From Haliotis rubra (taxonomy: Eukaryota), in the NCBI RefSeq assembly GCF_003918875.1, contig NW_025766747.1:248001-312000 (forward strand): DNA of 64,000 bases, read 5' to 3'. This document shows, piece after piece, positions 913-62,105 of this stretch (within the stretch, counting starts at the first letter, position 1; each line of letters begins with the position of its first letter). Made by a program: the position numbers and the translations under genes. The notes beneath the pieces are model-generated. The model was not told the DNA's origin. It made no database searches and saw nothing but the letters and a program-made list of their open reading frames with translations.

Positions 913-1991
913 TCACTGCAACAGTGATGAATCCACACTAAGCGACGTATGACCTCGAAGACCTCGAACCCAACTCTGACTGATATCCCTTGTAGAACCC
1001 GTCATTGACTGTTGTATGTGTGGATACAGGTAGGTGCAGGAACGGTCAGGTACATTTGAAGTGGGTGTGGGAGCTTGTGGTACGTATGTTCGACTCAGGG
1101 ACGATCTTGCCGGGGAGAGCTGGAGAGAGGGGAGCCGGTGAGAGAGCTGTTGATGCTGCTGGGGTTGTAGTAGCCGGCTGATGGAGAGTAGACTGTAGGA
1201 GATCCCATTGTCCAAGGACTGGAATCAGGCTTGCTCGATGTGCTGTAGGTCAGTCCGTGGGGTAAGGAGCCGAGACTGAGGGGGTTGAAACCTGTGGAAG
1301 GAGATGGACCCCCATACAATCCGAATAACTGTCCATAAGAACTGGCAGGATGGAATGGAGGATCATCACGACGTTGCTTTTGTGCCGACTTGAAACGTTT
1401 GGAACGACGAAGGAAACTGCCGTTACCGAACATGTCCCCGCACGATGGATGCAGAGCCCACAGGTTACCCTTGCCTGGTTTCCCTGGAGGTCGGGGCACC
1501 TTGACGAAACAGTCATTGAGGGAGAGGTTGTGTCTGATTGAGTTCTGCCATCTCCGTTGGTTGTCTTGGTAGTAGGGAAATCTCTTGATGATGTAGTTGT
1601 AGATGTCGTTGAGAGTCATCATGCCTGTAGTGGAACTCTCGACGGCCATGGTGATGAGAGCCACGTATGAATAGGGAGGCTTCTTGTTGGAAAATTGTCT
1701 GTCTTGTTGTGAGAGCGTCGATATTCCTGAGAAACTATCCAGATTGATGTCTCCGTCTCCGTTTGAAGATACCGATGACGAAGGAGAAGGGAGAATATTG
1801 TCATAATTTGGAGATGGTAGTTGAGTTTGGACAGACCCATGACTGATCTCTGATGTGACGTCTTCTCCTTCAGAAGTTTGAGGCATGACTGTAACGGAAT
1901 GTTCAGAAGGTGTTGGGTGACCAGATGTCGTCTGCTGTCCAATACAAGGAGCCGTACTTGGCACATACTGAAACATGGATGGATTATACAT
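913..1991 (-). CDS. foxAB: Forkhead box transcription factor, FoxAB-like, copy 1 (intronless; one apparent -1 frameshift at 1112-1115)
   Basis: Forkhead domain [18 protein letters not shown]...[20 protein letters not shown]...[24 protein letters not shown] in ORF 1095..2066. Likely start is ATG 1991 (MYNPSMFQY, homologous to [10 protein letters not shown] of copy 2), since ATG 2060 is only about 14 nt from the TATA box. As assembled it stops at 1095; adding one base to G4 at 1112-1115 joins ORF 913..1215 ([15 protein letters not shown], homologous to copy 3 [15 protein letters not shown]). Class call rests on recalled FoxAB-type MMTLN and [12 protein letters not shown] motifs (FoxB has MFENG). 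Confidence 0.85.
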
Positions 1992-2073
1992 GATTCCTGA
2001 CTCAAGGTGCAGCAGGTGAAAAGGTATTATCTCAGTAGGCAGTTGAATGTTCCTCCCCATCTCCACGGCGAGG

Positions 2074-2100
2074 TTTATATGCCCCGTTCAGATAATCCCC
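2074..2100 (-). promoter_or_regulatory. Core promoter of Fox copy 1: TATAAA plus TAATCC site
   Basis: tttata at 2074-2079 (TATAAA on minus strand), TAATCC at 2093-2098, and a CCAAT box (gattgg) at about 2221. Confidence 0.65.
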
Positions 2101-4647
2101 TCGACACGCGCTTTACAGATCTCATTTGTTTCTAGAGTAGGCGACCATTGATACGTAAATTAGATTGATCTCAAACCTAGTAATTGGGATCTCAAATACA
2201 TGGTACCTGTTATCTGCTCCGATTGGTTATGCACCAGATTTGAACTCCGCCTCTGCTTAAGTAGTTTTACAGTCAATGTACAGCTTTGAGTGTGTTGATA
2301 AGTTGACATAGAGAAAAACATTATGTAGCAATTGATAGGTTAATTAGATTTGTGGATGTAATGGGTGTGTCCTCAATCACGTGACACTGTCAATTACTTC
2401 TGGCCAGGACAATAGCCCTGCCTCCAGGCAGCAATACCTTGTTGCTTCTTTACGACCTTCATGTTACATGTAAAAGACACATTCACAAATTTATATCTAG
2501 AACAGAAATATTATGTCAATTGCTCTGCTTAAGTAAAATGATGCAAATTTGAAGGACTTGATCCTTTCCAGAAATCATAAGGGGAATTTTGCGATGGTAC
2601 GTCATAACCTGCCCAATGAACATGAAATTGGTATGTATGTCCAATATAACTGATCACGGTATCATGGAGACGTGTTACTTAGCTACGTTTATGTCATACA
2701 GCTAATGTCACCACAGTTCAGTCCCATTCTGTCTAGAAACATAAATATTGGTCATCACAAAAAATAACATCCAGTTTTGTGACAGAAGCTACAATGATGG
2801 TCGTTGTTCTAAGTATTGGTGCAGAGAGCAGTGCTTCAAGTTAAGGATTTCGACGAAGTTGTGGAAAAGGCTCTTTGTTGACTTGTTTGTTAATTATATT
2901 AGGGTGAAGAAATATGTTGGTTCAGTGCAATCAGATTTGAGTACCCTGCCTTTCGTGGCTGATGGGATACATTAATTCTGAAAAACAATTTAGTTGTTTG
3001 TAAGAGCTATGAATATATATACTGGTACCTGTATACACAGGCAAGTGGCAAGTGTAGAATATTGGCAGCTAGCCGCTTTTGCTGATATTACGTAGACAAT
3101 GTCACAGCAATTATCTCCACCCCACAGTTGCAGTGCTAAGTATTTTATAGATATATTTTCTAACCTTTTTTTAAAATTGTGCACATTTATCTCTGCTCAT
3201 AACTATCGACACGCCTTCCAGGTATATGCGTCTCAGTGTAAGGTTGACTGTGTTTATGAGCATGGGTGTATACCTATCAATCGTGTCTCATAAGATCCAT
3301 TGGTAGGACATTGCAATCCACTGTTTTATTAATCCTGATTCGTATTACTGTATTTCACATTTATTTTTACAGAACCTGAACTTCCGATCTGGAAATACAC
3401 AATGGCTAAATGTACTTCCACAACACAAGCGACACAAGATGACGACAGGAACACTGGCTCACAGACGAGTCAAACAGTGACAATGATAGTTTCTGTAATA
3501 ATGAAACGCTAATTGCAGCTAATAAAATGTCACTACGTGTTGCTTGAATGATGAGCATCACACCTTGTATCGAAATCCTTACCCAGGGGCGTCAGGTGAA
3601 ATACCGTGTCTCCCCCGGGCCTATCTCCCTGACTTTTCCTGAGTAATTTCCAGGGTCAATATTGAACCACGTGTACTAACTTCGTGACATGCTTTTCAGC
3701 ATGGTATAAATCCGATTTGTAGCAACCAGGTTACGTAATACGTAAATCCAATATCTACGGCCACGCCCATCAAAGATATACACTTGCTGTGCATGACATG
3801 CAGGTATATGAGATTCCTATTTGTCCAGTGTACCATGTAGATTGTTCCCATGTGTATCATTATAACCAGTTAAAACTAATTTACGCAGTGTTACTAATAT
3901 GAATATAAATTATGAGTTACTATTACATGGCAATGCAGATCCGACTGTTCGCATAAATTAAAACATGTTTAAAATTGTTCAAATCAATCAAAAGAATATT
4001 TTAATTATTGTCATTATTCCACTGTTTCCCCATCATTCTGTCTATCTTGCTTAAAGAAAGTAAATAATATTTATGAACTCACTACGAAGAGGGTGTTCTA
4101 AGTTGTATAACCTGTACCCAATTCTTTTCTCGTGATTAATATATGTTTAAACAAACTAGTTTATCCATCTATGTTTCGTTCAGTAATGTTCTGCTTTCAT
4201 GTGAATACGAAGTCCTCACAACATAACCAAAATATACAAGTTAATATCAACAAGGTGGAATTTGCCAGGTAGCAACTGACATTCACAGGCTATGTCGAAT
4301 TACAGCATTTACTCAACAGTACTGATCACCATACATACTGTTTCACAGCATACCACTGGGTCTATTGATCCCACCTTAACAAGCACTGTTGATATCACCA
4401 AGTGGATGTGTAAATCTGAGTCATAATCTCTTTTGACCACATGTTGGTGTTTTAGCATCACAAAGACGCTGCTCGTGGTCCATGGTCCTCAACATTACAT
4501 AACTCTAACAAACCAGTTTAAACCAGATTAAATACGGGATAGCTGATGTATCCAAATTCTTTCGAATGTTTAATGAAACCTTTACTGAGGTATTTTTCGA
4601 GATCCTCTCACAGATTTGTAACACGTGTTGCATGTCCTAATCGGTAG

Positions 4648-8745: not shown

Positions 8746-8747
8746 AC

Positions 8748-11550: not shown

Positions 11551-13955
11551 AAGACATATGTAGAAAACATACTATATATACCAGATTTACAGGAAGCCAG
11601 AGATGTACATGTATATACAATCAATCACAGAGGACATATAAAAAGGAAGTTATAAAAACAATGATAATAGGGATAAGGTAAAAACAGTTGACACAAACAA
11701 TGGGGGTAAGGAGATGTGAACACAGCAGAGTGAAAATCATTTAATTATAATTTATAGGAAGTGTTAATATATTTTGACAAAAACAACATTTGTATTACGG
11801 CTATTTAGGTTGATATTTGTATACATTAGTTGTCTATGGGGCTTATGGGTATTTGAATGAAACAGTAAACATGCATTGTCCATCTGTTCAAAGTGTGGAT
11901 CCACTGGAAATTTAATTCTACCTATATACATTACGTTTCTGGATATTAGAACTCGATCGTGATAGTTCTCAACTAGTTTGGTCAACCAAGATAGCCAGTA
12001 CACGTACGTTACAACATTTTGCACGAGGTCCACGGTTCTTTAAAACAAAGTGTGTCGGACAACAATGACATCTCAATCCTATGAAAAAAGGACGTTGTTT
12101 TTAACACGGTCACTAAAATACGACAGGTGTATTCTGCCTTCGTTAATACAACTAAACACACCAACAGTAACTATTGACAAATCAACTGTGCAAAATAACA
12201 GTGATTAATCAATCAACGTATTATCAGTTAATCATTTCATCGAAGTTTTATGAAGCAAATGATAATTCCTCTCGCTCCCTGCGCTTCCACAAGGATCTTA
12301 CATAACATGTAATACTTCTGCCACATCAGACCTGAAGGCTGAATGTATACGAGATATGCCAAATGGGAACTTTTCTCAGGTAAACTGAGTGGTGTTAGAT
12401 AAGTAACCTTTACCGGTTATAAATTGATTAACTGAGCATCACTTGAATGGTGGCAAATAGATATACCACAAGTGTATACCACCAAACATGATGGGTGACA
12501 ACAATGAGGTGCTATTCGTTCTATTGCATGCTATTTAGTTGCCTATAAAACGGAATGGTCGTTGCTGTCTTGATGATACAAACTTATTGTTGCTTTTATA
12601 AAGCATAAATAATGCTGTACATTTTCTGTACACAAAGTTGATAATTGTACATATATGTTAACGTGAGTGGATTTATAAATTATAGTTGCCCCTACAGATT
12701 TTTGCTTCCGTGCGTCCCTGTAAGAAATTTCGATCGATTGAAGCGTTTAAAATTGTGTCCAGTGCCAAACTTGCAAACCTCTACTGTACACCTTTTGAGG
12801 ACTGGACTAAGTTTAACAGCTGGCAGGTTTTCTTTCAAGCGTATTGCTGTGTTCCAAACATTTTCAACCTCGTTACTATACTGATATCAAGCTATGCAGC
12901 GACATGTCGATGAATATGTATTTTCTTGTGTCCTTTCGTCGAGCGTGTCATGTGCGGGGTTTCGCACTTTGCACAACTACTCAATAATACATTGCAGAGT
13001 TGCCTCCCTTACATAGGACAGCATGTTGCCGGAAGAGGGTCAGCTGGATCGTTGTGATGTTATGTTTCATGGGTTTCACTGACAGATGACACATGTATGC
13101 GAAAACAAGAGGCATTTCTTCACCTATTGTAAACAGAACATGCTCAGGTAAAGTGTCCGTGTTACGTGCCTACCGCATGTGCCCGAATCCCTCTTCACAA
13201 TTAAACTATCGAGGGTAGTGTTGCAGTCACCGAGTTGTACTCAGTAGGTGTTTGGTTGTAAATCAGAAAATACAAACATGGTCAGCTATCGATGGTCATC
13301 AGTAGAGGGGACACTGCGGTCATATATGAGACGGAAACTGGGTGTGAACTCAAGGGTAGGACTAGAGCAGGGTTTTACTTCGACTCACAAAAATATTTGT
13401 TAGTATCAATGTGAAGTAATGGTGTACAGTAGAGAACTGAAGAATATAATATCAAAGTTGTTTAAAAATATGGCATGAGTTTAATCATTTTAAATACATT
13501 GGGGCATTTTGACTACCTCCCTGTGGCAATTTGACCAAATTTGCTGGGGCATTTTGTAGCTGGCAATTCGACTGGTACCCCCAGTAAAGCTGATGAGGGG
13601 TCACTCTTGACCCGAGTGACATCGAATTATACCTTGAGTACAATCAGATACATCAAATTGTACTCTGAGTTTTATGTCTAGGCTTGTCTTTTTGTAACCA
13701 GCTTCTCTCTTCTAGTTGACTGAGCAGAGACAATGGAATCTGAGATAACAGGGTTACTTGATGCTAGTTTCATGACGATTCCTTGTTACATGGACAATAT
13801 GGACAAAACATGTATTGTCATGAACTAGCGCTGTAGCAGTGAGCAAGCCCTTGGTATAGAGTATAGCTGGTCATAAGAAGATATAAACTTCAAACATAAT
13901 CTGATATAGTTAATGGTATCCCAGGTACCTGTTGCTGGTAACCAGGTTGATGAGA

Positions 13956-14201
13956 CCCGTGAAGATCTAGGTTGGAATTGATCTTCAGTAACTCATGCTT
14001 GTCGTAAGAGGCGATGGACGGTTTCAGGTGGTCAGGCTCGCTGACTTTGTTCACACATGTCATCGTATTCCAATTGTGTAGATCGATGCTCGTGCACTTG
14101 ATCACTGGATTGTCTGGTCCAGACTCGATTTTTGCAGACCGTTGCCATATAGCTGGAATATTGCTGAGTACAGCAAAAACCTAAACTCACTCACTCACTC
14201 T
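13956..14201 (+). mobile_element. SINE family B, full length
   Basis: cccgtgaagatc...cttgtcgtaagaggcga...gctggaatattgctgagt...aaactcactcactc. Confidence 0.85.
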
Positions 14202-14210
14202 CCAGGTTGA

Positions 14211-18000: not shown

Positions 18001-21000
18001 ATGCTGGAATATTGCTAAAACAGCATGAAGCCTTACTCACTCATCCCTGAGTAAGTGAGCACTGCTTACAAGAGTACAGAATACCAGCGTCACAACACTG
18101 CAATGGCATTGATGGCTCCTGATACCAGACAGCTGGTATTGCCATGTGTTGTGTTGCCAGCCTGGAGTGTGGTGTTGACTTGTGTCCTTGTGTTGCCAGC
18201 CTGGAGTGTGGTGTTGACTTGTGTCCTTGTGTTGCCAGCCTGGAGTGTGGTGTTGACTTGTGTCCTTGTGTTGCCAGCCTGGAGTGTGGTGTTGACTTGT
18301 GTCCTTGTGTTGCCAGCCTGGAGTGTGGTGTTGACTTGTGGCCTTGTGTTGCCAGCCTGGAGTGTGGCGTTGATAGTTGTCCATGTGTTGCCAGCCTGGA
18401 GTGTGGTGTTGACTTGTGTCCTTGTGTTGCCAGCCTGGAGTGTGGTGTTGACTTGTGTCCTTGTGTTGCCAGCCTGGAGTGTGGTGTTGACTTGTGGCCT
18501 TGTGTTGCCAGCCTGGAGTGTGGCGTTGATAGTTGTCCTTGTGTTGCCAGCCTGGAGTGTGGTGTTGACTTGTGGCCTTGTGTTGCCAGTCTGGAGTGTG
18601 GCGTTGATAGTTGTCCATGTGTTGCCAGCCTGGAGGGTGGTGTTGACTTGTGTCCTTGTGTTGCCAGCCTGGAGTGTGATGTGATGCGCCACCTACTACA
18701 GGCCCAGATACTCATGTCAGAGTGGCAGTGTCTCCCCTCCCTGCTGCAGTTAAACCAGGCCCACACCAAGCTGGCTAGCTGGGCCAACATGGCGGCCATC
18801 AAAGAGGTGAGTTGTGGGTGACCAATGTTTCCAGTATGGCCAGGTAGCTATATCATCTTTGCAGCAGCATAGTTCATTGCACTTAAAACACTACAAGTAC
18901 TTTCACATCTGTATCAGCTTGTCTTCATCAATCTTGTAGCAGTCTGTTAGTAACATATCACCTCTCTGGCATAGATGCATAGTGTTTACAACTCTGACAT
19001 ATTCCTGATTGTAGTAAGCATGGTAGGGATGAGAGCAGAAGGATGCTTGTATGATTATATACTGTAACTGCCTGTCATGTTCATAATCCCTGTCATTTTG
19101 TTCAGCCTGCGTCCAAGGATAAGCCTACACCGGTAAGCTTGATGGTAGAAACATTGCTGTCACTTGTAGGCTGGGGAACAAGTTGCTTTGTAGTCTGTGT
19201 GATGTGTCATCTCTTTCTTATCTTTGGAATTAATTCTGTGTGGCTTTTATATGTTGTGTGTAACCAATGGTTTCACAATCTGTATACTGGAAATGGAAGG
19301 TTTCGTGTGCTAATATCACTAACATCAGGAGGTTGCTGAACATGATGTCAGCGACAGGCAGGAGCGGTGGGGTAGCCTAGTGGTTAAAGCATTCGCTTGT
19401 CACTCCGATGACTCATGTTTGATTCCCCACATGGGTACAATATGTGAAGCCCATTTCTGGTGTCCCCGCCGATGATATTGCTGGAACAATGCTATAAGTG
19501 GCGTAAAAGTAAACTCACTCACCCATTCACCGCTCAAACTCCAAACCATGTTAGCATAGTCAGTGATCTGATTCCGCCAGTGTCGATTAAAATAGGGCCC
19601 CAGCATATGAATGTGTCATCAGAGACAACCTGGTTCCCCTGGTGTCATTGATTCCTCAGGGGTGGGACATTGTACATGATAGAGTTCACTGGTGTGTCTG
19701 GTCGAAGCACAGTTTCTCTAAGTGATACAACTGCTGTTGACAACAGCACAAATGGTTTTTAACATCTCTATCACACAAAGTACAATACATCAATGCAGTG
19801 TGTTGGATCCCTGGCTACTCACACATCCGTAGGCATCTTGAACTGTTCTGTATATTGGCAGAGGTACAGATAAGCTGCGTATCTGCATAAATTACGCAAA
19901 TATTTATGTGAAAACTCAATTCCTATTAAGTCTATTGTGTACAAGTACGCTTGAATATTTGTAAATACTCAATAAATGTGATCTTACATGCGTACACACA
20001 AAAATGTCAAATCTTAGCTTGCGTACCGGTGGATAGATAAAATAACAAGTATATTGAGACGTTCTATTTCAGGACATGAACATGACAACTTGCAGTCTTT
20101 CTTATCGTTTCTCATATTACAGATCAAATATAAATAACAAGCATTAACATTTAGACTTTACTATATTTTCAAATTTAATGGAAAATGGCAAAATACCCAA
20201 TTGAGTTTGAGTGAGTTGAGTACAATATATTTGGTTACTCAAAGAAAAATTAGGATACCCAATTGAGATGAACACAAGTGAGTACTTAACTCAATTACCC
20301 AAACAGTTATCTGTAGCTCTGTTTTGGTTTTAGGTGCTAAGATATTCTTCAAATCACATTTCACTACCCAGCTATGTTTTCAGTGTTCATCATGATGTTG
20401 TGGTCATTATATGTGAATGGAAATATATGCTGGACAGAAACTACCCCTTCCCCCTTTAAGCCTTGCTGGAGTGCTGAAGTCAAACTGTTTCATTCCCATC
20501 AGCACCATACAGGTTGTATGTTACATGAAACACACCAAAAAGTTCAGATAGTTGGCAGTGCAAATTTGTGTAAATCAGTAAATCACACTACTACTCAGGA
20601 ACAGACTTGCTGATATTTTGTATATGCACCTTAAAGGAAGATCACTTGTTTTATATATATTAACACAGATGACATAGATAGTACACATATAAAAATGGGT
20701 GGTTCTCAACACAGTTTCATTAGAGTCAGTGAGTGAGTTTAGTTTTACACCGTACTCAGCAATAGTCCAGCTATATGAGGGCGGTCTGTAAATAATCTAG
20801 TCTGGACCAGACAAGCCAGTGATCAGCATCTTGAGCATCGATCTACGCAATTAGGATATGATGACATGTGTCAATCAAGTCAGCGAGCCTAACCATCCGA
20901 TCCCCAGTTTGATAAGAACAGATATCACCTGTAGATATGACTTGGTCTTCAGTAAATGATTTTATAACATTTTGTAATATTTAAAACCTAGTACCGGGGT

Positions 21001-24427: not shown

Positions 24428-25288
24428 TTATTGTTCAAATAGGATGTCTTCAGTAGGAGGTAATGATTGTAGCTGCATCTCTGTGGCTAAGTTTCGAATC
24501 TTTTCTGCGATTTTAGTTGTGTTTCTCTCCCTCCACTTAATTACCTTATAGCAGAAATAAAACAAAGTAACAACGTTTACAACAAAGCAAGCAAAAGCCA
24601 AGAAGGTGTCCAACACTTCCATGGCCTTTCCAAGGTCGTTGAGAGACAGCCATGTCTCTTTGTGACTGGGAAGTAATGAACTATTCGTTATTAAGCCTGG
24701 GACGATCACCAGTGGGTTCTTTCCACTGGACACGGAGTCCACTACCGTGGTGAAAATCTTCTGTAGGTCCTTGATACTGCTGATGAGTATCCATGCGGGC
24801 AGAATAGTCAGAAAAGCATCCTCCACAACTCGCCATATCTTACCTCCACAACACAGTAGTAGGAAGGATTGCATTGTACACAGCGGTTCCTCAGGCTCTA
24901 GAATCAAGTCACTGAAGGCACATAAGGTCGGTTTACTTAGTGCTATAAGGTTGGTATCTTTCGAAACGATGTATACGTTGGGATACTTGCCCCTTCCCAG
25001 AAACACGTCTCTCGTGGCCTTGATGGAGTTGTTGTCGTAGCAGTCCCGCACCAGTTTGATGGAGAAGGTGGCAAGACCTGCCGCCAGCGCCAGACTAGCT
25101 CCCACCACGCCGATGTGAGAGGACTCAGTGAAGTCTTTGAAGGTCCAGCCTGACCCAAACAGAACAAAACCACTACCAGTCATACCAAAGACCGAGAAAA
25201 TGATTCGGAGGATGTTCAGGGTCCGGTGTTTTTTATCAAGTTTGTCAGCAATTTTGTTTAAACTGCTCTTGAAACCCTCGGGCTCCAT
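24428..25288 (-). CDS. Apolipoprotein L family-like membrane protein (single long coding exon)
   Basis: ApoL-like pattern LNKIADKLDKKHRTLNI, two Gly/Ala-rich hydrophobic segments, and C-terminal FVVNVVTLFY...TKIAEKIRNLATEMQ. Acceptor ttcttccag lies just upstream (exon start 25306); ATG at 25288; upstream exons not identified (gap at 25452). Confidence 0.65.
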   Translation of the reverse strand: MEPEGFKSSLNKIADKLDKKHRTLNILRIIFSVFGMTGSGFVLFGSGWTFKDFTESSHIGVVGASLALAAGLATFSIKLVRDCYDNNSIKATRDVFLGRGKYPNVYIVSKDTNLIALSKPTLCAFSDLILEPEEPLCTMQSFLLLCCGGKIWRVVEDAFLTILPAWILISSIKDLQKIFTTVVDSVSSGKNPLVIVPGLITNSSLLPSHKETWLSLNDLGKAMEVLDTFLAFACFVVNVVTLFYFCYKVIKWRERNTTKIAEKIRNLATEMQLQSLPPTEDILFEQ

Positions 25289-38427: not shown

Positions 38428-39504
38428 TTACATAAAGTTAGTGTATTGGTTTCCCAAAGGTTGAATGGACTTTGTAGCACTGGGGAGTGATTGCTGTACT
38501 CGCTGGTACAGAGAGTCATAAGGATTTCTAGATCTCTCAAAGCTGGACGATGAAACTTGAGGCATATAGGTCCCACTCAGGGACGAGCTTCCCGGCGGAG
38601 AGCTGGAGAGAGGGGAGCCGGTTAGAGAGCTGTTGATGCTGCTGGGGTTGTAGTAGCCGGCTGGTGAAGAGTAGACTGTAGGAGATCCCATGGTCCAAGT
38701 ACTGGAATCAGGCTTGCTCGATGTGCTGTAGGGGTGTGTCTGGGTCAGCCCCTGGGGTAAGGAGCCGAGACTGAGGGGGTTGAAACCTGTGTAAGGTGAT
38801 GGACCCCCATACAATCCGAATAACTGTCCATAAGAACTGGCAGGATGGAATGGAAGATCATCACGACGTTGCTTTTGTGCCGACTTGAAACGTTTGGAAC
38901 GACGAAGGAAACTACCGTTACCGAACATGTCCCCACAAGATGGATGCAGAGCCCACAGGTTACCCTTGCCTGGTTTCCCTGGAGGTCGGGGCACCTTGAC
39001 GAAACAATCATTGAGGGAGAGGTTGTGTCTGATGGAGTTCTGCCATCTCCGTTGGTTGTCTTGGTAGTAGGGAAATCTCTTGATGATGTAGTTGTAGATG
39101 TCGTTGAGAGTCATCATGCCTGTAGTGGAACTCTCGACGGCCATGGTGATGAGAGCCACGTATGAATAGGGAGGCTTCTTGTTGGAAAATTGTCTGCTTT
39201 GCTGGGACAGAGTTGACGTTCCTGAGACAGTGCCTAGACTTGTGTCTTCTTCCCCATCGTTGTCGGAGCTCAAGGAGGAAGATGGTGATGGCAAGGTGAT
39301 GTGGTCGTTGTCTGGAGAATGTTGCTGTTGAAGGGGGTCCCTCATGTCTATAGGAGAGAGTTCAGACCTGACGTCGGGTTCACGTACACCAAACTTGGAC
39401 GAAGTAGGGTGATGTTGTGTTGCATATAGCGGTGCCATCGTCATAGCCGTTGATGGGTCAGCAACAGCACCTTCATACTGAAGCGTTGTTGGATTAAACA
39501 GCAT
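38428..39504 (-). CDS. foxAB: FoxAB-like forkhead transcription factor, copy 3 (358 aa, intronless)
   Basis: Intact ORF; N-terminus and 5' UTR nearly identical to copy 2 but C-terminus distinct; TATA at 39579-39584, TAATCC at 39594-39599. Confidence 0.9.
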
Positions 39505-40931
39505 TTTGTATTCTCAGAGAATCCTGTATACTGTACTCGAGCAGCAGTGAGACTATACCTTCATACTGGTCCGGGGAGTATATATCCCTGTAATAATCCT
39601 CCACAAAAACATCTTACAATTCCAATTTGTTCCCAGAGAGCAACTCTATTGTTAGGTAATTGTACCCCCGGGAATTACCGGAGGTCCGGCCAGTGTAAAT
39701 GTAGCATAGATGCTATTGGCTACTTGTAAACAGAGGTCCCGCCTACGTGTTTAGACACCAATCACATTGGTAGTGTAAGCTCTCGCCTGACGCTGGATGC
39801 AATGAGAAATGCCTACCTGATTGTGAAATATTTTAGCTAAATATTTCTTATTTCTTCATAAGCCGAATAAACTATCATTTGTGCTCAGTGTCTTTCTCTA
39901 CAATAGAATTTTGAGCACAATGCAACACTTCTAATTACAAACGTACACATTTAGAGAAAGGCTTATTAGTCCGTTATTCATTGATGTAGTGAAACCCGTA
40001 TCCATAGGGTTCCGGTAGCCTGAGGGTTATCTTGTACATGTCAACTTCTAAAGCTTAAGTCAACATTGATGTCATAACCCTGTAAAACAGACGACATTTT
40101 AACAAATCTATCTAAATCATAAAGTTTTATCCGAGGGTAAAAACGGAAATGATCGCCTTCAAAATATTAAAATATGTCCACATGTATATTTAGATCCACA
40201 TCAATCTTCTCAGTGTATCATATTTGCAGTCGTTCTGTATATTGAAATGTTAATGTCATGAATGCTAAAAAAGGACATATCACAGTCCACTATGAGTGAA
40301 GGGCTGAGTAGGCCACACTTGTTGTCAAAGGTTGTGCATATACTGAGTGACGACTACATGCTTGTACATACTGAACCTAGCGATACCTGGCGACACATTC
40401 AGGGTGACAGACTGTTAGTAACGTGTTGTACTGGCGTTGTAAGGGAAAGGTCACATGCTGAAATAACCATCACATGTCGAAAACACCATGGGTCCTGGAA
40501 ATAGTAATCGAAGACATACAGCTTCTTTAAAAAAGTTTCAACACTTACTGACTTGAGAACAGAGCAGTATCAATTATGACTGAAATAACATCCAATCTGC
40601 TCCAGCAGCCGAGTGGCATCAGCATCCTGTAAACATACTTACATACAATATACATACACCGGAGAAATGGGCAGGATTGTAATGAATAACTAAACAGGCA
40701 CGTATTCGTGCTAACTGATATAGGTGTTGCTCAATTTTTCATTTGTTACAACATATTTTGTGTTTGTAGTAGTTAACCGAATATTGACAATTATTTCTTT
40801 TGAATTGAATTCTCTTGAATCTGTTTGTGTACCTGTATTGATTATATGCACGAAGAGTATGTTTTTAGACTGAACAGTGACAATATGGTGAAATGCTCAG
40901 ACAATACTGATATGACATGTTCATTAAGGAT

Positions 40932-44905: not shown

Positions 44906-45106
44906 NNNNNNNNNNNNNNNNNNNNNNNNNNNNNNNNNNNNNNNNNNNNNNNNNNNNNNNNNNNNNNNNNNNNNNNNNNNNNNNNNNNNNNNNNNNNNNN
45001 NNNNNNNNNNNNNNNNNNNNNNNNNNNNNNNNNNNNNNNNNNNNNNNNNNNNNNNNNNNNNNNNNNNNNNNNNNNNNNNNNNNNNNNNNNNNNNNNNNNN
45101 NNNNNN
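44906..45106. other. Assembly gap (N run)
   Basis: Run of n. Confidence 0.99.
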
Positions 45107-45396
45107 CTACTATTAGTTTTATATTACTGCTACTGCTACTGCGCTAGGATAAGCGCAGACAGGGGAGTTTACTTGATCTACGCCACTGAGGGATCTTGTG
45201 CCCACGACCAACAACATTGTAATGTATTTACGAGACGATAATGTCTCCGTCGATGTATGCTTCGGTCTACTGTCGAACGGCGAATTGTATATAATGAGTT
45301 TCTGTGTTACCAACTTAACATGTTGTTTTTGAGAATGGAGAACCCGATCAACTTACAAGATAAACAGTATGCTGTAACAACTCATTGAACAAAGTA

Positions 45397-45653
45397 CCAG
45401 TGAAGGTCCGGGTTAGAATGTTAGATTGAACCTTCAGTAACCCATGCTTGTCGTAAGAGGCGACTAACGGGATCGTGTACCGGTGGTCAGGCTCGCTGGC
45501 TTGGTTGACACATGTCATCGGTTCCCAATTGCGTAGATCGATGCTCATGCTGTTGACCACTGGATTGTCTGGTCCAAACTGGATTATTTACAGACCGCCA
45601 TATAGCTGGAATATTGCTGAGTGCGGCGTAAAAGTAAACTTACTCACTCACTA
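45397..45653 (+). mobile_element. SINE family B, full length
   Basis: ccagtgaaggtccgggttagaat...cactcactcac; imperfect flanking duplication ending acaaagt. Confidence 0.9.
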
Positions 45654-45978: not shown

Positions 45979-47067
45979 TCACTTCGACATCCCGAAAAAA
46001 GACATATTCAGAGCAGCTCCTGTGAACGTTGGATAGAACTGAGGAGAGGAATAATTATACAAATTCTGAATAGCACTGGAGTTCGGTGATTCTGGGATGT
46101 ATGTCCCTGGCAGAGGCGGGTTTCTCGACTGGACAGAGGGCATCTGTGGCATATAGGCCGTTTGATGTCCTGGGGGAGTGCTGGAGAGAGGGGAGCCGGT
46201 CAGGGAGCTGTTGATGCTGCTGGCGTTGTAGTAGCCGGATGATGGAGAGTAGAGTGAAGGAGATCCCATAGTCCAGGTACTGGGGTCAGTCCTGCTTGTG
46301 CTGGGGTGTGTCTGGGCCAGTCCCTGGGGTAAGGGGGAAAGAGATAGGGGGTTGAAGCCTGGGTAGGGGGACTGACCCCGGTAAAGACCAAGCTTTCCAT
46401 ATGCTGTGAACCGCTCAATCAGCGCGTCGTCTTGTCGTTGTTTGTGTCCTGACTTGAAACGTTTAGCACGACGAAGGAAACTACCGTTACCGAACATGTC
46501 CCCACAAGATGGATGCAGAGCCCACAGGTTACCCTTGCCTGGTTTGCCTGGAGGTCGGGGCACCTTGACGAAACAATCATTGAGGGACAGGTTGTGTCTG
46601 ATGGAGTTCTGCCATCTCCGTTGGTTGTCTTGGTAGTAGGGAAATCTCTTGATGATGTAGTTGTAGATGTCGTTGAGAGTCATCATGCCTGTAGTGGAAC
46701 TCTCGACGGCCATGGTGATGAGAGCCACGTATGAATAGGGAGGCTTCTTGTTGGAAAATTGTCTGTCTTGTTGGGTTTGAGTTGACGTTCCTGGGACATC
46801 ATCAATGTGTACATCGTCATTGCCGTCCTTGTCTGTGCATGGTGACGGTGACGGCAGAAGGTCTCCGCCAGGGGAGTCTGTCTCTTCTCGGTATGTGGCT
46901 CTAAGAAACATGTCTATTCCCTTTGGCGTTCCAAGAGGCGCAGTGGACTCCGGTGTTGCCGGCGCAATCGTAAATGTTTGAGGCCCCATGTACGGAGGTG
47001 TCTCGAGCTGCATCACGGCCTCGCCAGTCACGCTGCCGTACGGAGATAACAGTGTATGATTCAACAT
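45979..47067 (-). CDS. foxAB: FoxAB-like forkhead transcription factor, copy 4 (about 362 aa, intronless)
   Basis: Intact ORF from ATG 47067; only copy with RRAKRFK; TATAAA at 47129-47134 and gagattatcc at 47144-47153. Confidence 0.9.
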
Positions 47068-47894
47068 GGTCACGGTGATGTAGCAGTGAAGGTACAGTGT
47101 TGTATACCGTCGTCACCCCGTCCATGGGTTTATATTCCCCGCCGAGATTATCCCCTCAATGCAGTTTGTTTTGTCTCTTGATTAGTCAGCCATTGTTGGG
47201 TAATTTGGAATGGGTCGTGTATTATACAACAGGCACGTCTTTAATTGGTCGTTCATTCCTAGTGGCCGGCTCATCTGCAGCTACGCCCACCATTGTCCAT
47301 TCTATTAGGCCGCCCCAGTTTTAGATAGGTCAGGGAATTTGGGTCGTTTTATTCAGTTTTATTATTGTATTTCTTCATGCATATCCCAAAGCCGATTTTA
47401 GTCTGTAAAGTGAAAAAGAAAATGCAATCAGAAACGTAGATAATGCTATACTGTCTCACAAACATATTAGTCTTGAAGGTCACACATACATGCTGATAGA
47501 TATAGTGTACAACGGTAGCAGTCCTATAATGTTGGTGATGTATTAAAGTACACGCGAAGCTGGTGCACTAAATAGCTTATTTGGCATGAACCACTTAAAG
47601 ATGAAAAATAATGATAGAATACTTTGCATGTTCGCGATCGTATATACAAAATGCATCCAAGGTATCAATTGAAGCAGTAGTACACCTAGGGTATCCAAGC
47701 GTTGTATCCGCCGTGTTGGTAAGGGAAATCTTTGCTCTTGTCACACAGTCTTGCGGAGATGTTTTTGTCACTCTCACACATACTCTTTGAGAAAAGATTT
47801 GAGCACGATTCTTATTTTGTAAACAATCTAAAAAGCGAAAATACATCAACGTACACTTGTGTTTGTAGGGGTAGGTTTGAAGCTGAAGTGCAAA

Positions 47895-48848: not shown

Positions 48849-51074
48849 TAACATGATAAGCGCTTAACCAGATCTGTGATATATCATGTACGATATGTTC
48901 TTGCACGTTCATGACACAGCCTTCATCCGGGTAACTCCTGGCTGTTACTGTGGGTGCCACCGAAGACACTAATAAAACAATACATGTAACACCTCAACAG
49001 TGAGATCCCTGCACCACTATTCATTGTGATCTGACTGCAAGATGTACATCACACCCTAATCAATATACCTACCCACTGGCTGCGACGTACCCCCCGGACT
49101 CTCACCCCCTGGGGATGATTGACCAATATGTCACTCAAGGATCAACTTTGTTAAACATGTCAGTTTTAACTACTAGAATAAATATTAACTATTCCAAATT
49201 GACGATTGAAAGGTGTACAACAAAGTCGAAAATTGCTGCTCTGTATTTGTCAGTAATTGGAAATGATGACAATACTAGCACGATATGCGAACTGTATTGT
49301 TCATCAAAATACAGGAATGTCTTAAATCACCATTAATGGAAAGACAATAGCAATCCATTAAGTCAGCAAATATCATTATATGTTTGAATGGAGGATATGT
49401 AGACGTGACAGACTATGGAATTGGTTTTATTATCAGGACGAATAAGAAAACACACGCACGCACGCACGCACATACACACTGTGTTGGGTTATCCGCGGAT
49501 TAGGAGTATTCACCTTAATAATATACATGTGACACGAGCAGTTGTATCTGATTACCGTTCATGGTTTCATGATGGCGTTATTGGTATCACAACACAGCAA
49601 CACCAAACTTATCGGTTGTTCGTATCGATGATCGCAGAAATATCATTCACTCTGTGTCAATTTAGCTTCATACTGTTCATAGTGTGATTTTAGAAATGAT
49701 GTCTGCTACAACAACAAATCCAAATAGATAGCGAGCGGTTGGATTTCACCCTATTTTCAACCTGCGAAAGGCTGTTGAACAAGAACACAATGATGACTGC
49801 TGGGGCTATTACTCACACGTAGCAGTGAAATATTGCAAACACACAGAAATTGTTGGACAGTGATACTCTTTTCTCAACATGGAGTTATGCCACTTTAACG
49901 ACTCTAAGTTAGGGACATGGTACTATAGTGTAACTGTGAATGAGTGAGTGAGTTTTCAGCAATATGACGGTTGCGAACACCAGAAATGGCCTTCTACATT
50001 ATACACACCTTTGTCGTGACGAGCTAAACAGCTTGGCCACCCTAGAGGCCGCAATGAATGAATGATTGAATTTGTTCTCCATGGCGTTTTGACATTACCC
50101 AAAGCAAAGACCTGAAGTGTTATGCATGTCTGAATATGTTTTAATGTTAATTATGTGAATAGATACGTTTACAAATACGCAAAAAATACAAAAAATCCCT
50201 CTTATCAATTTTGTATCAAGTTACAAATCGTGTTTTCTGCGTCAAGCGAGTGTTCAAGATGAGAACAATAAATACTCTGCCATTTCAATCCATTCATGAA
50301 TTCATGATGCATGAAAACAAAGTTACGAAGGGCTGTCAAAAAGTAGTGTGTCTCACCAAGAAAATGATACAAATGCAGCTGTTTTTATGTTTTATTTTTC
50401 TACATATTATCTGTCAAGGAAATTGGTTTTGCTGTGTTCCAGCCTCACGATCCCCATTGTATTTCACTTTTTATATTGGTACCCCCATAAACGCAAAATC
50501 TGCAATAAATGCATCCCAAACTTCAGGAAACAAAATATGCAAGAAACATTTTGTGTGTTTTGAGATAGGTAGAAGTCTGCTAGAATCAAACTTAGATATT
50601 AAAGTGCATAAAAAGCAACTTGAAACTACAATCGCTTGTCAAAGTGACAACCCCCACCCTTCACGTTTACCGAAACAGCTTGTTTTGGAGGCACTACCCA
50701 CCCTCTTTCAGTTGACGTAATCATAAGACATAACTTATTTTAATGGTTTCACTTATTCAGACATAGTGTCAAGGTCACACAAGTGTCAGTGCTCAATATA
50801 TTGTAAACAGTGACAGCTTGAATATCTGGACACAATGTTTTTGGAAGACTAGAATGGAGGTGTCCTTAAAAAACATCCCCCTCTAAATATAAATCAAGCA
50901 ATCCGAATCTTTGACGGGAAGTCATCCAATACTATACTGAACATATGATGGTATTTGAGAGCATACCATTATTCAAGAGGTACCAAATGACAGATCGTTT
51001 TTCATTTTCTGCAATTATTTTACACATATTATACCCCAATGTCTTGTGATGACTAATATGTCGTTAACCACAGT

Positions 51075-52282
51075 ATTCCTACATCGGGCAGCCAGATTCT
51101 TCTTAGCCGTCGCTAGAAAAACTCCAAATTTAGCAGTTCGTGGCGAAATGGGCTGGGTTTCTCAGTATACCAAACAAAAAATTGAGGTTCTTCGTCTTTG
51201 GCGTAAACTTCAGTTACTTGAATTTAGCAGAATACCCAGCGTTATTAGCAGATGGTCATTTAATTGGAGGAGATCTTGGTATAGTGGAGCTCATAAATTA
51301 TTTATTAGTTTTCATTTACCTATAAATGATCTGTTTAGTATTTCACATGAGGAGTTTGTTGCGGCTAAAGAACACCTTAAGGCACTAGACAGTTTTGATT
51401 GGTTTTCTGGGCTCTGGAATGATAAAGGGCAGGACAACGGAAATAAATTACGTACTTATCGTCTTTTAAAAGATTTTTTACAAGTTGAACATTATGTTGA
51501 AACAATTCTACCTAGGTCACATCGTAGTATCTTGAGCAAATTCCGTTGTGGCACTTTGCCATTAGAGGTAAAATTGGGTAGATATTCTCGTCCGAAGTCT
51601 CCCCTTCATGAAAGGGTGTGTACTCGCTGTAGTAGCAATGCCGTTGAAGATGAATTACATTTTCTGGTTAACTGTGATTATTATTCAGATCTCAGATATA
51701 ATCTTTGGAAGGAAATAACCAGTGTCCATCCTACATTCTCCTCTATGTCAGCAGTAGATAAAATGGTATTCTTACTTACAAATAACCAGTTCGTAAAACA
51801 CCTTGCCGCACTCGTCCATACTATGTTTAGGCGCCGGAATATTTCTGTAGAATAGGTAACTCTACAATGTACTTATAATAATAACGTCAACGTGTTTGTT
51901 ATTTATGTAATTTATGCATTTTAGGTAAGAAAGTGTAAGTGTGTGTGCGTGCGTGCGCGTGTATGTGGGCCTGTCTGTCGTAGGTGTCTGTCTGTAGGCT
52001 CGTGCGCTCGTGTGTGTGTGTGTATGTGTATGTGTGCGTGCGTGTGGGTGTGTGAAGGTGTATGCGTTTTGTGTTTGTGCATACAGTTCGGCCTGCGTGT
52101 GTGTATGTGTGGGTGTGATTTTATTACTAATGTTTTATACAACTGTGATATTTGTGTCTCATAGGCCTTATGGCTGGATGCTGCTTTTAAACTCTCGCAA
52201 TAATGTACCGTCCTTTCTAATGTTCTGCAGCATGTGACACATTAATAAACTATATTTCTTCTCTTCTTCTTCTTCTTCTTCT
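51075..52282 (+). mobile_element. 5'-truncated non-LTR retrotransposon (open ORF2 C-terminus, TG-rich 3' UTR, (TTC)n tail)
   Basis: HRAARFFL..TPNLAVRGEMGW, GNKLRTYRLLK, FRCGTLPLEVKLGRY, RVCTRC..VEDELHFLVNC zinc knuckle; aataaa followed by ttc repeats. Confidence 0.88.
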
Positions 52283-54021: not shown

Positions 54022-55874
54022 TAATTGAAACAAATCTTATTGTACAAAATCCAATACGCATAAGGTGATGCCCGGTTATTTACGGAATGAAATAATTTAA
54101 CATACTAAATGAGAAAGTAATGCAAAAATATTGCATCTGTCACGTGATAAGCATCATCGTGACAACGCCAACTTAGAGTAGGACATGCTTACTCTTTTCC
54201 CGAACACCGGGTGTCACCACTTATGAGATCCATTCAAGTAATGTTCACAACTACTTTGCCTTTAACGCTCAGAGGCGAGGCTGATTATCATCTGTCGTTG
54301 AATTTGTATATTTACCAGAAACGATGACACTTATTTTGATTTCAATGGACTGAGAATCAAACATAATTATATAACACTGCCGCGGACCTAATCTGTGGCA
54401 TGATTTACAGTGCGTCGAAGTGAACAAATATGTACTTGGTTCTGTACACACTAGCAATCAGATTACACCATCGATTATGTATTGGTGTCTCACTCTTCAC
54501 ATTCATGACATATACCACAGTGGTATGAAACATTTATTTGGTAAAAGGCTCCGTTTGGGGTTTAAGAGCCATTTGTCTATACGTTATTGAATACCATCCT
54601 TTGTTTGACAAATAATGTTTCTGGAGGTTCTCGTGGTTTAGTGACATTTATCTGTTATACAAAAGACACAAAAATAAACAAACAAACAAGGTAGGAGAGA
54701 CTCATTAAATGAGTTGTTGGATTATAGAGACACCATCCGCTCTGTTTTACTTCACTTACTTTATGACGTCCAAACTATTTGACATATATCAATTATGTAC
54801 ACCGTTTAAGGTTGAGAACGTTGTCAGTACTGAATATCAGTTTTCGTTGATCTAAATCATTTATGCATGCTACAAGCCTATGACATAAAACATGTATGTC
54901 ATACCACACTGACAGAAGTATGCCCATGCAAGAAGGTAGCAGGAAACCACATTCTTCTTTGTTTGCTGCTTAACACCTCAGTCAGAAATATTCCACCTAA
55001 ATGACAACATCTGTACATAATCGAGTATGGACCAGGCACTCTAGTGATTGACATAATGATTTTCAACTGGGATCGACAACATGCATCAGCTAAATCAGAG
55101 AGATGATTACAGATTGTATGGAAGTTAACTTTGACTGTCACGTACACAGTCTGTAAATAGCCTCCCCATGACCAATTCCTTGATGAGCGATGACGAGCTG
55201 TACACACGATAACAGCACACATTTTCTTGTGAGAAATGCATTATAGGAAATCGTGCTGACAAAGTCAAAGCATCCACTTTCAAAGAAAATATGTAAAGGA
55301 GCCTAACTCGTGACGTCAATACGACTTACAAAGCACTTTGCAGGTACATACCTTCACAAAAGGTTGAATGACAAATATGTTGACGTAAACAAAACAAGTG
55401 AATAATTACTGTTCAATAAATCATGCTTTGTTCAGTCAAGTAACCAAAGTAAACTCAGGAGGTATGCCTTCAAACACAGTAACATCCGAGCTCGATATAT
55501 TCCTAAAATCTCGTGTGTATTTTGTAAGGAAAAGTATCCTTGAATAAACAAGCAACATATATAACTCTGGAAATATACTGGACAGAAATAGTTAGGGATA
55601 TATGTAAATTTTGAAATTGTGAATAATGATCTATTGATTCATGGACACACTGATAAAATATCAATCATAAAAAATTATCAATATCCCTCATTTATTTTGT
55701 CCAGTATATATGTTTATTAATAAATACCCGTAAATATATATTATATGTGACATTCCATATACTTGCATGATGTCATAGAGAGAAGAATCCAAGTCTTCCG
55801 TGTACAACTGTGTGATCCATATCTAAAAGTCATTGCACATAGCACTATTGAGTCCACTTGAGTCAAGTGTTCGA

Positions 55875-56967
55875 TCACTGATCACAGTCTAATGCTGTAC
55901 TGAGGCTGGGGTAAAGGTGGCCCCTGTACAACCGGGCTGAGAAGTGCTGTTGTAGAGCGAGATACGAAGTGTGGGTCTGGTCCGACAGGGCTGATGGCTT
56001 GTCTGTGCTGTATACCCGTTCGGGCCCTGAATGAGAGCTGGAGAGAGGGGAGCCGGTCAGGAGCTGTTGATGCTGCTGGCGTTGTAGTAGCCGGCTGGTG
56101 GAGAGTAGACTGTAGGAGATCCCATAGTCCAGGTACTAGGGTCGGGGTTGCCTGGTGTGCTGCAGGAGTGTGTCAGTCCTTGGGGTAAAGGGCCAAGATT
56201 AAGGGGGCTGAAACCTGGATAGGAAGATGGAGCCCTGTAAAGCCCAATCTGTCCGTACGGACTGACGTGGTGTAGAGTAGCGTTGTTGCAGTGTTGTTTT
56301 GGGGCCGACTTGAAACGTTTGGAACGACGAAGGAAACTACCGTTACCGAACATGTCTCCACAAGATGGATGCAGAGCCCACAGGTTACCCTTGCCTGGTT
56401 TGCCTGGAGGTCGGGGCACCTTGACGAAACAATCATTGAGGGACAGGTTGTGTCTGATGGAGTTCTGCCATCTCCGTTGGTTGTCTTGGTAGTAGGGAAA
56501 TCTCTTGATGATGTAGTTGTAGATGTCGTTGAGAGTCATCATACCTGTAGTGGAACTCTCGACGGCCATGGTGATGAGAGCCACGTATGAATAGGGAGGC
56601 TTCTTGTTGGAAAATTGTCTGCTTTGCTGGGACAGAGTTGACGTTCCGGGGAAGTTGTCAAGGCTGAGATTGATATCACCGTCGTTGTCAGAAGATAACG
56701 AAGATGATGGTGATGGCAGGAGGCTGTCGTCATCGTGTACTGAAAGGTGATAATGGTCGCTGTGCGAAGTCTCCTTGAGTTTGTTATCCAATCCATTTCC
56801 TGAAAGAGGCGCTTGCTGAGGCCTGCGTTTTACTATCGACGAGTGAGATACAGGTGAAATGGGGGGACGTCGGAGACGACACCTGCTGCACCATAAAGGG
56901 GGGTGGTATCGTCTCCATTACAGTACATCTGGAAGGTGTTTAAACACTGAACAGCTGAACTCGCCAT
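55875..56967 (-). CDS. foxAB: FoxAB-like copy 5; two apparent -1 frameshifts in G runs (young pseudogene or assembly error)
   Basis: ATG 56967 ([15 protein letters not shown]) lies about 60 nt below TATAAA 57027-57032. One extra base in G6 at 56861-56866 joins the forkhead ORF 56057..56791. gg at 56060-61 is ggg in copies 2, 4 and 6; restoring it extends the frame to TGA at 55875-55877. Confidence 0.75.
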
Positions 56968-57882
56968 ATTCACCCAAAGGAACAGGAAGGTACGCTTTAG
57001 TGTCGATACTATCCACAACTCTGGCATTTATAGCAAAACCGATTCATATTCCATAAGCGGACAAACTAGGAAACAATACAAGTAACATGCAGAAGAAGAA
57101 AGTCCAGTATGCGTTAATTAAACGCCTGCTGCCATTGACCGATCTCACTGTGCTTGTCTTTCTATTGTTGTAGGTGCGGGGATGTTCAGCTGCCCCAGAT
57201 CGCCCGAGGTTTAGCTATTATACAAAGCAAACACTTATTATCTGTGTTGACTCAAACATTTCACGCTCGTTAACATCTACTTATGTGTGTAGGTTTAAAC
57301 GATTTGTACAAAGACAACTAGAACCCAAGAAGTACTCTGTATGCCATTACAACTTGATTTAAACAGTATTTAATATGTAATACACAATAATGAATAATAC
57401 ATAAAGGATCAGTAAACAGACTGCATCAAGCCTAATTTTATAAATGCTTCTCCTAGACATAAACTTATAACGAATGAATTTTGTGGAAATACAGAAAATG
57501 AGCAGACAAATGCTTTCATAATTCAATAATTTCAGACTAAATACAGCATATGGAACCACACTTTATGAACAACGGTCGGTATCATTCAAGAAATTGTAAA
57601 CAGACAACTTGATACTCAGCATTACTATAGATCAGTAGCGAGCAGTTTTAATGTGATGATAATAAAATACATTTATAGTTATATTTCATTTTTGAATATT
57701 GGTTTCGTTAAGATTCGCGACTGACAATGGTGCGACATAACAACAGCTTGTCTTAACAACATGGTGACTCAACAACGATGTGAGAAGACATGACCAAAGC
57801 TTGTTGCCTCCCGCCTGTAGACATAAGCTGGCCGAGTCGGCCTCTTTGATGTCGTCATGCAACTAACGAGATTAAATCAGCT

Positions 57883-60583: not shown

Positions 60584-60720
60584 NNNNNNNNNNNNNNNNN
60601 NNNNNNNNNNNNNNNNNNNNNNNNNNNNNNNNNNNNNNNNNNNNNNNNNNNNNNNNNNNNNNNNNNNNNNNNNNNNNNNNNNNNNNNNNNNNNNNNNNNN
60701 NNNNNNNNNNNNNNNNNNNN
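60584..60720. other. Assembly gap (N run)
   Basis: Run of n. Confidence 0.99.
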
Positions 60721-60995
60721 CCCTTAAAGCATCTTCGCTGCAGCGTGATGTACAGTCACTGATACCTTAGTTGTGGTATCAAGAATCACATACAAATATT
60801 TGAAATAATGATATTTTATTATTTTAGCCACACATAAACACATGTACAGGATCACATTCATTCGCTTTTATGAAGATGCTGAATGTGACATGGAAGATGG
60901 ACCAGTGGTGTTAAAGAATAACATCATAGCACTTATGGATGCAAGTGGTACACAAAAACGTCTTAAATGTCAGATGATTAACAAAGTACTGTTCG

Positions 60996-62105
60996 TCAGC
61001 CAGTTTTCGCTTTGGTTACGGAATCGCTGACAGTATCATTTGTCTTGTTTTTTGGAAATGTCAAGGCTTGGTAAAGAGCTGGGTAAGTTGAAGGTGAGAA
61101 GTCAGGGAGAGAACCAGGGTATGGCATCTGTGACATGTAGGTCCAACCCAGGGGCGAACTTCCTGGGGGAGAGCCGGAGAGAGGGGAGCCGGTCAGGGAG
61201 CTGTTGATGCTGCTGGCGTTGTAGTAGCCGGCTGGTGGAGAGTAGACTGTAGGAGATCCCATAGTCCAGGTACTAGGGTCGGGGTTGCCTGGTGTGCTGC
61301 AGGAGTGTGTCAGTCCTTGGGGTAAAGGGCCAAGATTAAGGGGGCTGAAACCTGGATAGGAAGATGGAGCCCTGTAAAGCCCAATCTGTCCGTACGGACT
61401 GACGTGGTGTAGAGTAGCGTTGTTGCAGTGTTGTTTTTGGGCCGACTTGAAACGTTTGGAACGACGGAGGAAACTACCGTTACCGAACATGTCTCCACAA
61501 GATGGATGCAGAGCCCACAGGTTACCCTTGCCTGGTTTGCCTGGAGGTCGGGGCACCTTGACGAAACAATCATTGAGGGACAGGTTGTGTCTGATGGAGT
61601 TCTGCCATCTCCGTTGGTTGTCTTGGTAGTAGGGAAATCTCTTGATGATGTAGTTGTAGATGTCGTTGAGAGTCATCATACCTGTAGTGGAACTCTCGAC
61701 GGCCATGGTGATGAGAGCCACGTATGAATAGGGAGGCTTCTTGTTGGAAAATTGTCGATTTTGTTGTGAGAGAGTTGACGTCCCGGAAGCATCAATGCCG
61801 ACATGGTCGTTATCTGAACATGACGATGGTGATGATGTTTTACTGACGTCGTTGTCTGATGGGGTTGTCATGGCCCCAACATCTGGAGATAGCTGCAGAT
61901 TACCTTGTACGACATCAACGGGGTGAGTTGATTCCTCGGGATTTGGAAAAGACATATGCGGCTCCGGACTTGAGTTTGGAGACAAGAAGGACAACATCTG
62001 CTGCATGGAAGAAAACGACGACATCATGTTGGATAATTTGTCAGTTTCTTGATTGCTGTAGTGGAAGACATCCATACCAGGAACACTTGAGTTGGAGACC
62101 GACAT
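60996..62105 (-). CDS. foxAB: FoxAB-like forkhead transcription factor, copy 6 (369 aa, intronless)
   Basis: Intact ORF; core nearly identical to copy 5 with unique termini; TATA at 62184-62190 and TAATCC at 62200-62205. Confidence 0.9.

Follow-up and report, generated by a model that had tools for sequence, protein, structure and literature searches.

A FoxB-derived tandem gene array in abalone (Haliotis) with a homogenised forkhead core and copy-specific ends

The 64,000-nt stretch of Haliotis rubra DNA analysed here (termed the window; positions 248,001 to 312,000 of contig NW_025766747.1, which is QXJH01000267.1 of assembly GCA_003918875.1) contains six intronless, FoxB-derived forkhead open reading frames (ORFs), all located on the minus strand and termed c1 to c6. 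Each of the six matches the Pfam Forkhead profile PF00250 over 87 of its 88 positions (E-values of 3e-37 to 7e-37). The tandem array to which they belong has at least eight members, with the H. rubra copies c1b (L010) and c0 (L011) found outside the window. The preferred explanation for these genes, to which a probability of roughly 0.9 is assigned, is that their core is homogenised by non-reciprocal interlocus gene conversion, while older, copy-specific ends evolve separately. Comparison with the arrays of H. asinina (L001-L004, CM074528.1), H. cracherodii (L005, L006, L008 and L009) and H. rufescens (L007) shows that sequence is exchanged between copies, where in the gene this exchange stops and that it has persisted in three lineages.

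Self-comparison of the window confines the homology between copies to approximately 600-650 nt, with the exception of c2 and c3, and the intergenic DNA between the copies is unrelated save for interspersed repeats. The core of 315 nt, which begins 15 nt ahead of the KKPPYSY motif (counted from its first K) and ends with KRFK, is 96.5-99.7% identical among the six copies, and all 15 pairs differ by 1-11 nt. Variation is found at 14 core sites, 13 of which are synonymous, and the lone amino acid change is located in c4. A 30-nt sliding profile of the p-distance between paralogs within a species runs at 0.5-0.6 in the N-terminus, 0.02 in the core (-15 to +300) and 0.35 just past the core, from where it falls to 0.15 along a linker. 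A second island, about 91 nt long (WTMGSP...LTGSPLS, termed the C-block), has a value of approximately 0.07, and the tail one of 0.4-0.7. The homogenised block is thus composed of two islands, of 315 nt and about 91 nt, and a linker that is uniform within subgroups only. The position of the edges varies from lineage to lineage by up to approximately 30 nt at the 5' side and approximately 5 nt at the 3' side.

Two pairs of copies share longer tracts. Positions 38597-39611 (c3) match 30860-31876 (c2) on the minus strand with 97.3% identity over 1018 nt, a tract that starts approximately 110 nt before the ATG and continues through N-terminus, core, linker and C-block. For c5 and c6, the blocks 56033-56649 and 61169-61786 are 98.2% identical, with 10 mismatches and one gap over 617 nt. 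Core variants that are shared between H. rubra copies are always shared between physically adjacent ones, splitting the array into c1, c2, c3, c4 and c5-c6. Much of this had been described in the initial annotation, which was made from the window alone. Its count of about 10 differences over about 315 nt between c1 and c6, all of them synonymous, agrees with the 11 nt differences and no amino acid difference found. The likeness of c2 and c3 through the N-terminus and the upstream region was borne out by the tract described above, and both diagnostic sites were recovered with the conflict described: c1 and c3 read YYNP versus YYNA in c2, c4, c5 and c6, and c1 and c2 read GAC versus GAT in c3 to c6 (aaacagtc versus aaacaatc on the plus strand). 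The near-identity of c5 and c6 stands, whereas the proposed count of about three differences over about 580 nt was too low. Similarly, the step-like edges of the proposed core of about 600 bp were recovered, but a single core was not, given the two islands and the subgroup-specific linker. The sole amino acid difference between c5 and c6 in their shared block, P versus Q after KRFKSA (window position 56301), is not supported by a short-read contig of two-copy depth, which carries the c6 state; it may represent an assembly error or a rare allele.

Separate trees for the segments of the gene across species had been set beforehand as the test of gene conversion among old duplicates, and the predicted outcome was obtained: the core groups by species, the termini group by positional ortholog and the segment trees are incongruent. 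In the core tree, grouping by species requires three label changes, the minimum possible, with clade supports of 96/94 for H. asinina, 82/85 for H. rubra and 97/90 for the Northeast (NE) Pacific pair. Approximately unbiased (AU) tests reject ortholog clades of the core for c6 (p=5e-6), c4 (p=2e-4), c5 (p=1e-79) and c1 (p=2e-4). The N-terminus tree, on the other hand, groups the sequences by ortholog class, with c1, c4, c5 and c6 each recovered at 99-100%. Here, c2 and c3 fall into one clade, in which they pair by species in all three lineages. The tail tree resolves six ortholog classes at 97-100%, each with the arrangement (H. cracherodii,(H. rubra, H. asinina)) inside. In addition, the best blastn matches of the 2-kb flanks on both sides of the genes are positional orthologs and not paralogs. 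As N-terminus, tail and 2-kb flanks all group by positional ortholog, the duplicates must predate the species split.

The arrangement of the arrays can be followed across the same species. The gene order c6-c5-c4-c3-c2 is common to the species compared. In H. cracherodii, the array goes on to c0, and a canonical FoxB gene is located 6 kb past c0. In H. asinina, the array is split, with c6-c5-c4-c3a-c3b at 55.33-55.37 Mb and c2 plus three c1 copies at 53.74-53.85 Mb. Copy number varies as well: H. asinina carries extra recent duplicates (c3a/c3b and c1a/b/c), and two c1 copies are present in each of H. rufescens and H. rubra.

Mosaic genes provide a view of the shape of the exchange. The linkers fall into four types, namely c1/c2/c3, c4, c5/c6, and c0 together with H. 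cracherodii c2. Within a type, linkers pair by species, as seen for c5 and c6 in each species, and the c4 linker follows the ortholog tree. The c2 gene of H. asinina, which is located beside the c1 copies and approximately 1.5 Mb from c3, combines a c3-like N-terminus (11 differences over 300), a c1-like linker including a 12-nt deletion common to the c1 copies, a c3-like C-block (1 difference over 101) and a c2-orthologous tail. A Sawyer-type runs test among the six window copies identified c5-c6, c2-c5 and c3-c5 (p=0.0005 each) and c1-c3 (p=0.0015). This test sees pair-specific tracts only and misses family-wide homogenisation because the core has just 14 polymorphic sites; the argument for family-wide exchange therefore rests on the cross-species trees. 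The linker types, the H. asinina c2 mosaic and the adjacency of copies with shared variants suggest, without proving it, that neighbours exchange sequence more often and that tracts stop where the similarity of the flanks is too low.

Homogenisation could also have proceeded mainly via unequal crossing-over together with the birth and death of chimeric copies. This route would accommodate the differences in copy number between species, the resemblance of c2 to a c3-type front joined to its own tail, and the H. cracherodii c2 linker, which is nearest to c0. However, crossovers within the core would swap the ends of the genes, yet the pairings of N-terminus and tail are identical for c1 to c6 in every species compared, and gene order and copy-specific flanks are kept. 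Tracts bounded on both sides within the gene, such as those of the H. asinina c2 mosaic, are also hard to reconcile with crossing-over. The constant pairings favour non-reciprocal conversion and leave crossing-over an unlikely main route; they also show that the termini are not shuffled, contrary to what had first been proposed from the window.

Synonymous divergence (dS) separates exchange from constraint. Core dS between paralogs within a species is 0.086-0.117. Between H. rubra and H. asinina it amounts to 0.22 for all pairs and 0.212 for orthologous pairs, and between H. rubra and H. cracherodii to 0.36 and 0.368, respectively; two copies are no closer for being orthologous. The dS of terminus orthologs is 0.17-0.55 for H. 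rubra and H. asinina and 0.29-0.60 for H. rubra and H. cracherodii. Set against these values, the core has a roughly ordinary synonymous rate, with silent sites that are not frozen by constraint. At the nonsynonymous level, core dN is 0.001-0.009, and the dN/dS of the termini ranges from approximately 0.2 to 0.65, with a value of approximately 1 for the c2 tail. The core has 43 lineage-specific derived states; 31 of these are carried by at least two paralogs of the lineage in question, and 12 by half or more of its paralogs. There are examples at the level of the protein: MAIESS (V to I) is found in all nine H. asinina copies versus MAVESS in H. rubra, and NYIVKRF (I to V) in all NE Pacific copies versus NYIIKRF in H. 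rubra. Parallel mutation cannot reasonably account for the shared lineage-specific states.

A scenario without exchange would attribute the identity of the core to very strong purifying selection, whether on protein, codons or an RNA or DNA signal that overlaps them. The forkhead domain is indeed highly constrained, as its core dN indicates, and the GC content at third codon positions (GC3) is raised in the core. Nevertheless, such a scenario is highly improbable, since silent changes in the core have accumulated between species roughly as fast as usual (dS of 0.21-0.37), the changes are common to the paralogs of one species while orthologs are no closer than non-orthologs, and the adjoining canonical FoxB stands at a dS of 0.54 from the array.

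The assembly itself was checked with Logan contigs, which are built from short reads and drop rare variants, aligned to window positions 55700-57300. Nine runs contain the c5 region, and the depths come from contigs of two samples of one organism and of a second organism. Single-copy flanks have a depth of 133-142 in X1 and 58-60 in X4, and the c5/c6 linker reaches 278 in X1 (2x). Core unitigs are found at 894-1242 in X1 (6.4-8.9x) and at 385-504 in X4, with no 1x alternatives explaining the depth. Although the assembly does contain 1-nt homopolymer indels in c5 and c1, the idea that polishing spread a consensus over divergent copies can be dismissed, as single core unitigs occur at about 6-9 times the single-copy depth and the pattern recurs with different species-specific states in four independent assemblies.

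Short-read contigs also clarify the C-termini of c5 and c1, which end early in the window sequence. Same-species contigs depart from the window sequence of c5 by three 1-nt indels in homopolymer runs (+1 after 56059, -1 at 56861 and -1 at 56898). With these taken over, an intact ORF of 363 amino acids (56967 to 55875) is obtained, with an N-terminus and a tail orthologous to those of H. asinina and H. cracherodii c5, and the possibility that c5 is a pseudogene was rejected on this basis. The RefSeq-type model P0012 of c5, which ends at SSINSS, skips the errors by means of a spurious intron. For c1, the C-run within 1110-1119 consists of four C in the window versus five C in a same-species short-read contig. 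The five-C version restores the orthologous tail apart from its final approximately 10 residues, which may reflect a second error or a real difference; a pseudogene status of c1 is thus probably wrong as well. The short, seemingly unrelated C-terminus of c5, and probably that of c1, is therefore the product of sequence errors, while the true tails are still copy-specific. Of the initial statement that the C-termini of c5 and c6 are unrelated, the part concerning copy-specific tails holds, and the short end of c5 is accounted for by homopolymer error. Two H. rubra gene models are distorted in this manner.

Under the gene conversion account, a tandem single-exon array would have arisen by duplication of FoxB before the split of the sampled Haliotis species, and the N-terminus, C-terminus and flanks of each member would have evolved independently and fairly fast since then. 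The 315-nt forkhead segment would be copied repeatedly from member to member by non-reciprocal interlocus gene conversion, and the C-terminal block of about 91 nt may be copied likewise, with weaker evidence for this block. Any new mutation in the core or the C-block, synonymous ones included, would then either be lost or spread through the array within the species. Tracts would end where the divergence of the flanks exceeds what homologous repair accepts, and selection against the overwriting of diverged ends may help to set these limits. Purifying selection on the domain would keep the substrate similar enough for continued conversion, and neighbouring copies would be expected to exchange more often.

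Several observations weigh against this account. The single core clade of H. rubra is moderately supported (82/85) and loses its resolution once the two copies outside the window are added, and resolution of the tree for the C-block is poor. The core has a GC3 of 0.62 versus 0.45-0.47 in the termini (0.56 in the FoxB core), yet polarised changes comprise 13 weak-to-strong (W>S) and 22 strong-to-weak (S>W) substitutions. Conversion is deduced from its products, with no event observed directly, and none of the nine runs that contain the c5 region is recorded as RNA. These data do not show a signature of GC-biased conversion, as the raised core GC3 is not accompanied by an excess of W>S changes.

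It is conceivable, albeit doubtful, that the shared core is more than a side effect of homology-dependent repair and is kept by selection as a constant DNA-binding module with variable effector ends, and that gene conversion is the means by which this is achieved. Such an arrangement would be comparable to constant and variable exons, and the tract edges might be held in place by selection against the overwriting of the ends. If so, binding sites would be common to all members while partners or expression would vary between them, and hybrids that carry a foreign core would be disfavoured.

In a tree of forkhead domains, the array forms a clade (100/99) that is sister to the canonical FoxB of Haliotis (99/96). 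Array and FoxB sit together in a FoxB-named clade that is set apart at 96/96 from the FoxC, FoxD and FoxE rows, few non-B classes having been sampled. A separate canonical FoxB exists (P0008; H. cracherodii L009, 16028-17155), and the array copies are thus lineage-specific paralogs of FoxB rather than one-to-one orthologs of the conserved bilaterian FoxB. The array shares an SPLS-rich C-terminal motif with canonical molluscan and lophotrochozoan FoxB, within which its domain nests. The array domain is distant from FoxB by approximately 11 of 100 residues (dN of 0.109, core dS of 0.54), and the FoxB core is not homogenised with the array. The C-block of H. cracherodii FoxB (L009) is very close to that of the array copies of the same species, and exchange of this block may extend to FoxB. 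The best protein matches are all from Haliotis, and among those matches the expansion is seen in Haliotis only. ORFs are intact in all species and the termini are under moderate constraint, which suggests that the array copies are working genes.

Concerted evolution has a precedent in the same genus: Swanson and Vacquier are said to have described it in 1998 for the repeats of abalone VERL. Both cases feature homogenised tandem coding repeats; the VERL repeats lie within one gene, whereas the array domain is repeated across genes. Clustered protocadherins of fugu, zebrafish and human undergo regional, lineage-specific gene conversion of tandem single-exon paralogs with raised GC3 (PMC1852091). 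The abalone array resembles them in its tandem arrangement of large single exons, in the homogenisation of one part, including synonymous sites, next to a diverse other part, in the sharp edges and in the raised GC3 of the converted part. It differs in that its members are transcription factors, in that conversion affects a DNA-binding domain inside the gene, bounded on both sides, instead of a 3' block, and in that all sampled members, not subclusters, join in the core; in addition, a GC-biased direction was not found. Long-lasting concerted evolution has also been described for duplicate gene pairs in mammals (PMC2720389), and islands of divergence persist under conversion in Tigriopus GOT1 (PMC3728101). 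As in these cases, paralogs are closer than orthologs over defined stretches in the long term, and diverged regions escape. In contrast to them, the abalone array has at least eight members and a hierarchy of tracts, with the core exchanged among all copies, the linker within subgroups and the N-terminus between c2 and c3. Among forkhead genes, Drosophila fd4/fd5 represent a FoxB pair (PMC8365472), and lineage-specific tandem expansions have been reported for foxQ2 in Spiralia (PMC9539403). The latter resemble the abalone array as cases, among molluscs and annelids, of a Fox class duplicated in tandem within particular lineages, but they concern a different class, and gene conversion or Haliotis are not mentioned in that study (PMC9539403).

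The literature searched, which is incomplete in coverage, yielded no paper on a FoxB array in Haliotis and none reporting gene conversion among forkhead genes. Regional interlocus gene conversion is a known process, and the abalone case is apparently undescribed. With at least eight old single-exon paralogs, the array constitutes a clean natural experiment on where gene conversion stops, and the nested hierarchy of tracts and the replicate arrays in several sequenced species add to this value. It also bears on duplicated transcription factors in general, as effector parts can diverge while the DNA-binding specificity stays locked together. In Fox trees based on the forkhead domain only, each abalone species would misleadingly appear to have undergone an independent expansion of its own.

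The positions of the individual genes in the window, all on the minus strand, are as follows. The c1 ORF as read covers 1095-2066, with an early stop after ...SSSP, and the coding sequence (CDS) likely continues to about 913, the tail being read once the homopolymer is corrected. Its core (RQFSN...KRFK; 1386-1700) is 4-11 nt from the other five, with an amino acid change relative to c4 only (one residue), and its C-block (1124-1214) belongs to a block in which the distance between paralogs is smaller than that between orthologs. For c2, an intact CDS of 348 amino acids extends over 30721-31767 (core 31144-31458, linker 30961-31143, C-block 30870-30960), and its tail is orthologous to that of c2 in H. 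asinina and H. cracherodii. The intact c3 CDS (358 amino acids) is located at 38428-39504 (core 38881-39195, linker 38698-38880, C-block 38607-38697), with a tail clade support of 99/99. The intact CDS of c4, which encodes product P0011, occupies 45979-47073 (core 46450-46764, linker of its own type 46276-46449, C-block 46185-46275). While the c5 ORF as read is restricted to 56057-56791, the real CDS extends over 55875-56967 (core 56306-56620, linker 56132-56305, C-block 56042-56131). Finally, c6 has an intact CDS of 369 amino acids at 60996-62105 (core 61443-61757, linker of c5 type 61269-61442, C-block 61178-61268).

Three assembly gaps (N runs) interrupt the window, none of them inside any of the six genes or the homogenised segments. 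The first gap (25452-25645) lies between an unrelated ORF and c2, and its flanks are collinear in H. asinina (L002), where they are approximately 96 nt apart. The second (44906-45106) lies 873 nt past the c4 stop and the third (60584-60720) 276 nt past the c6 stop. For these two gaps, the outer flanks are without a match in other species, whereas the flanks on the gene side do match; on the c6 side of the third gap, orthology with H. asinina continues to the very edge of the gap.

Additional elements were observed between the forkhead genes. Window positions 18149-18682 contain approximately 14 tandem units of 39 nt with 92-97% identity and long ORFs in six frames, and a C12orf66_like (KICS2) gene is present at the H. 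asinina locus in the same position relative to c2 as this repeat. An ORF of 297 amino acids on the minus strand (24428-25321) has no Pfam match and is kept beside c2 in H. asinina (L002, 15758-16618, a gene call of 286 amino acids), with 88.6% nucleotide identity over 1040 nt. A further ORF of 269 amino acids on the plus strand (51046-51855), between c4 and c5, likewise has no Pfam match and is possibly the remnant of a mobile element. An interspersed repeat of approximately 250 nt occurs between the forkhead genes in both orientations with 80-89% identity, at 13954-14199, 20724-20904, 26251-26385, 27587-27836, 35048-35292, 45396-45652 and 63706-63955.

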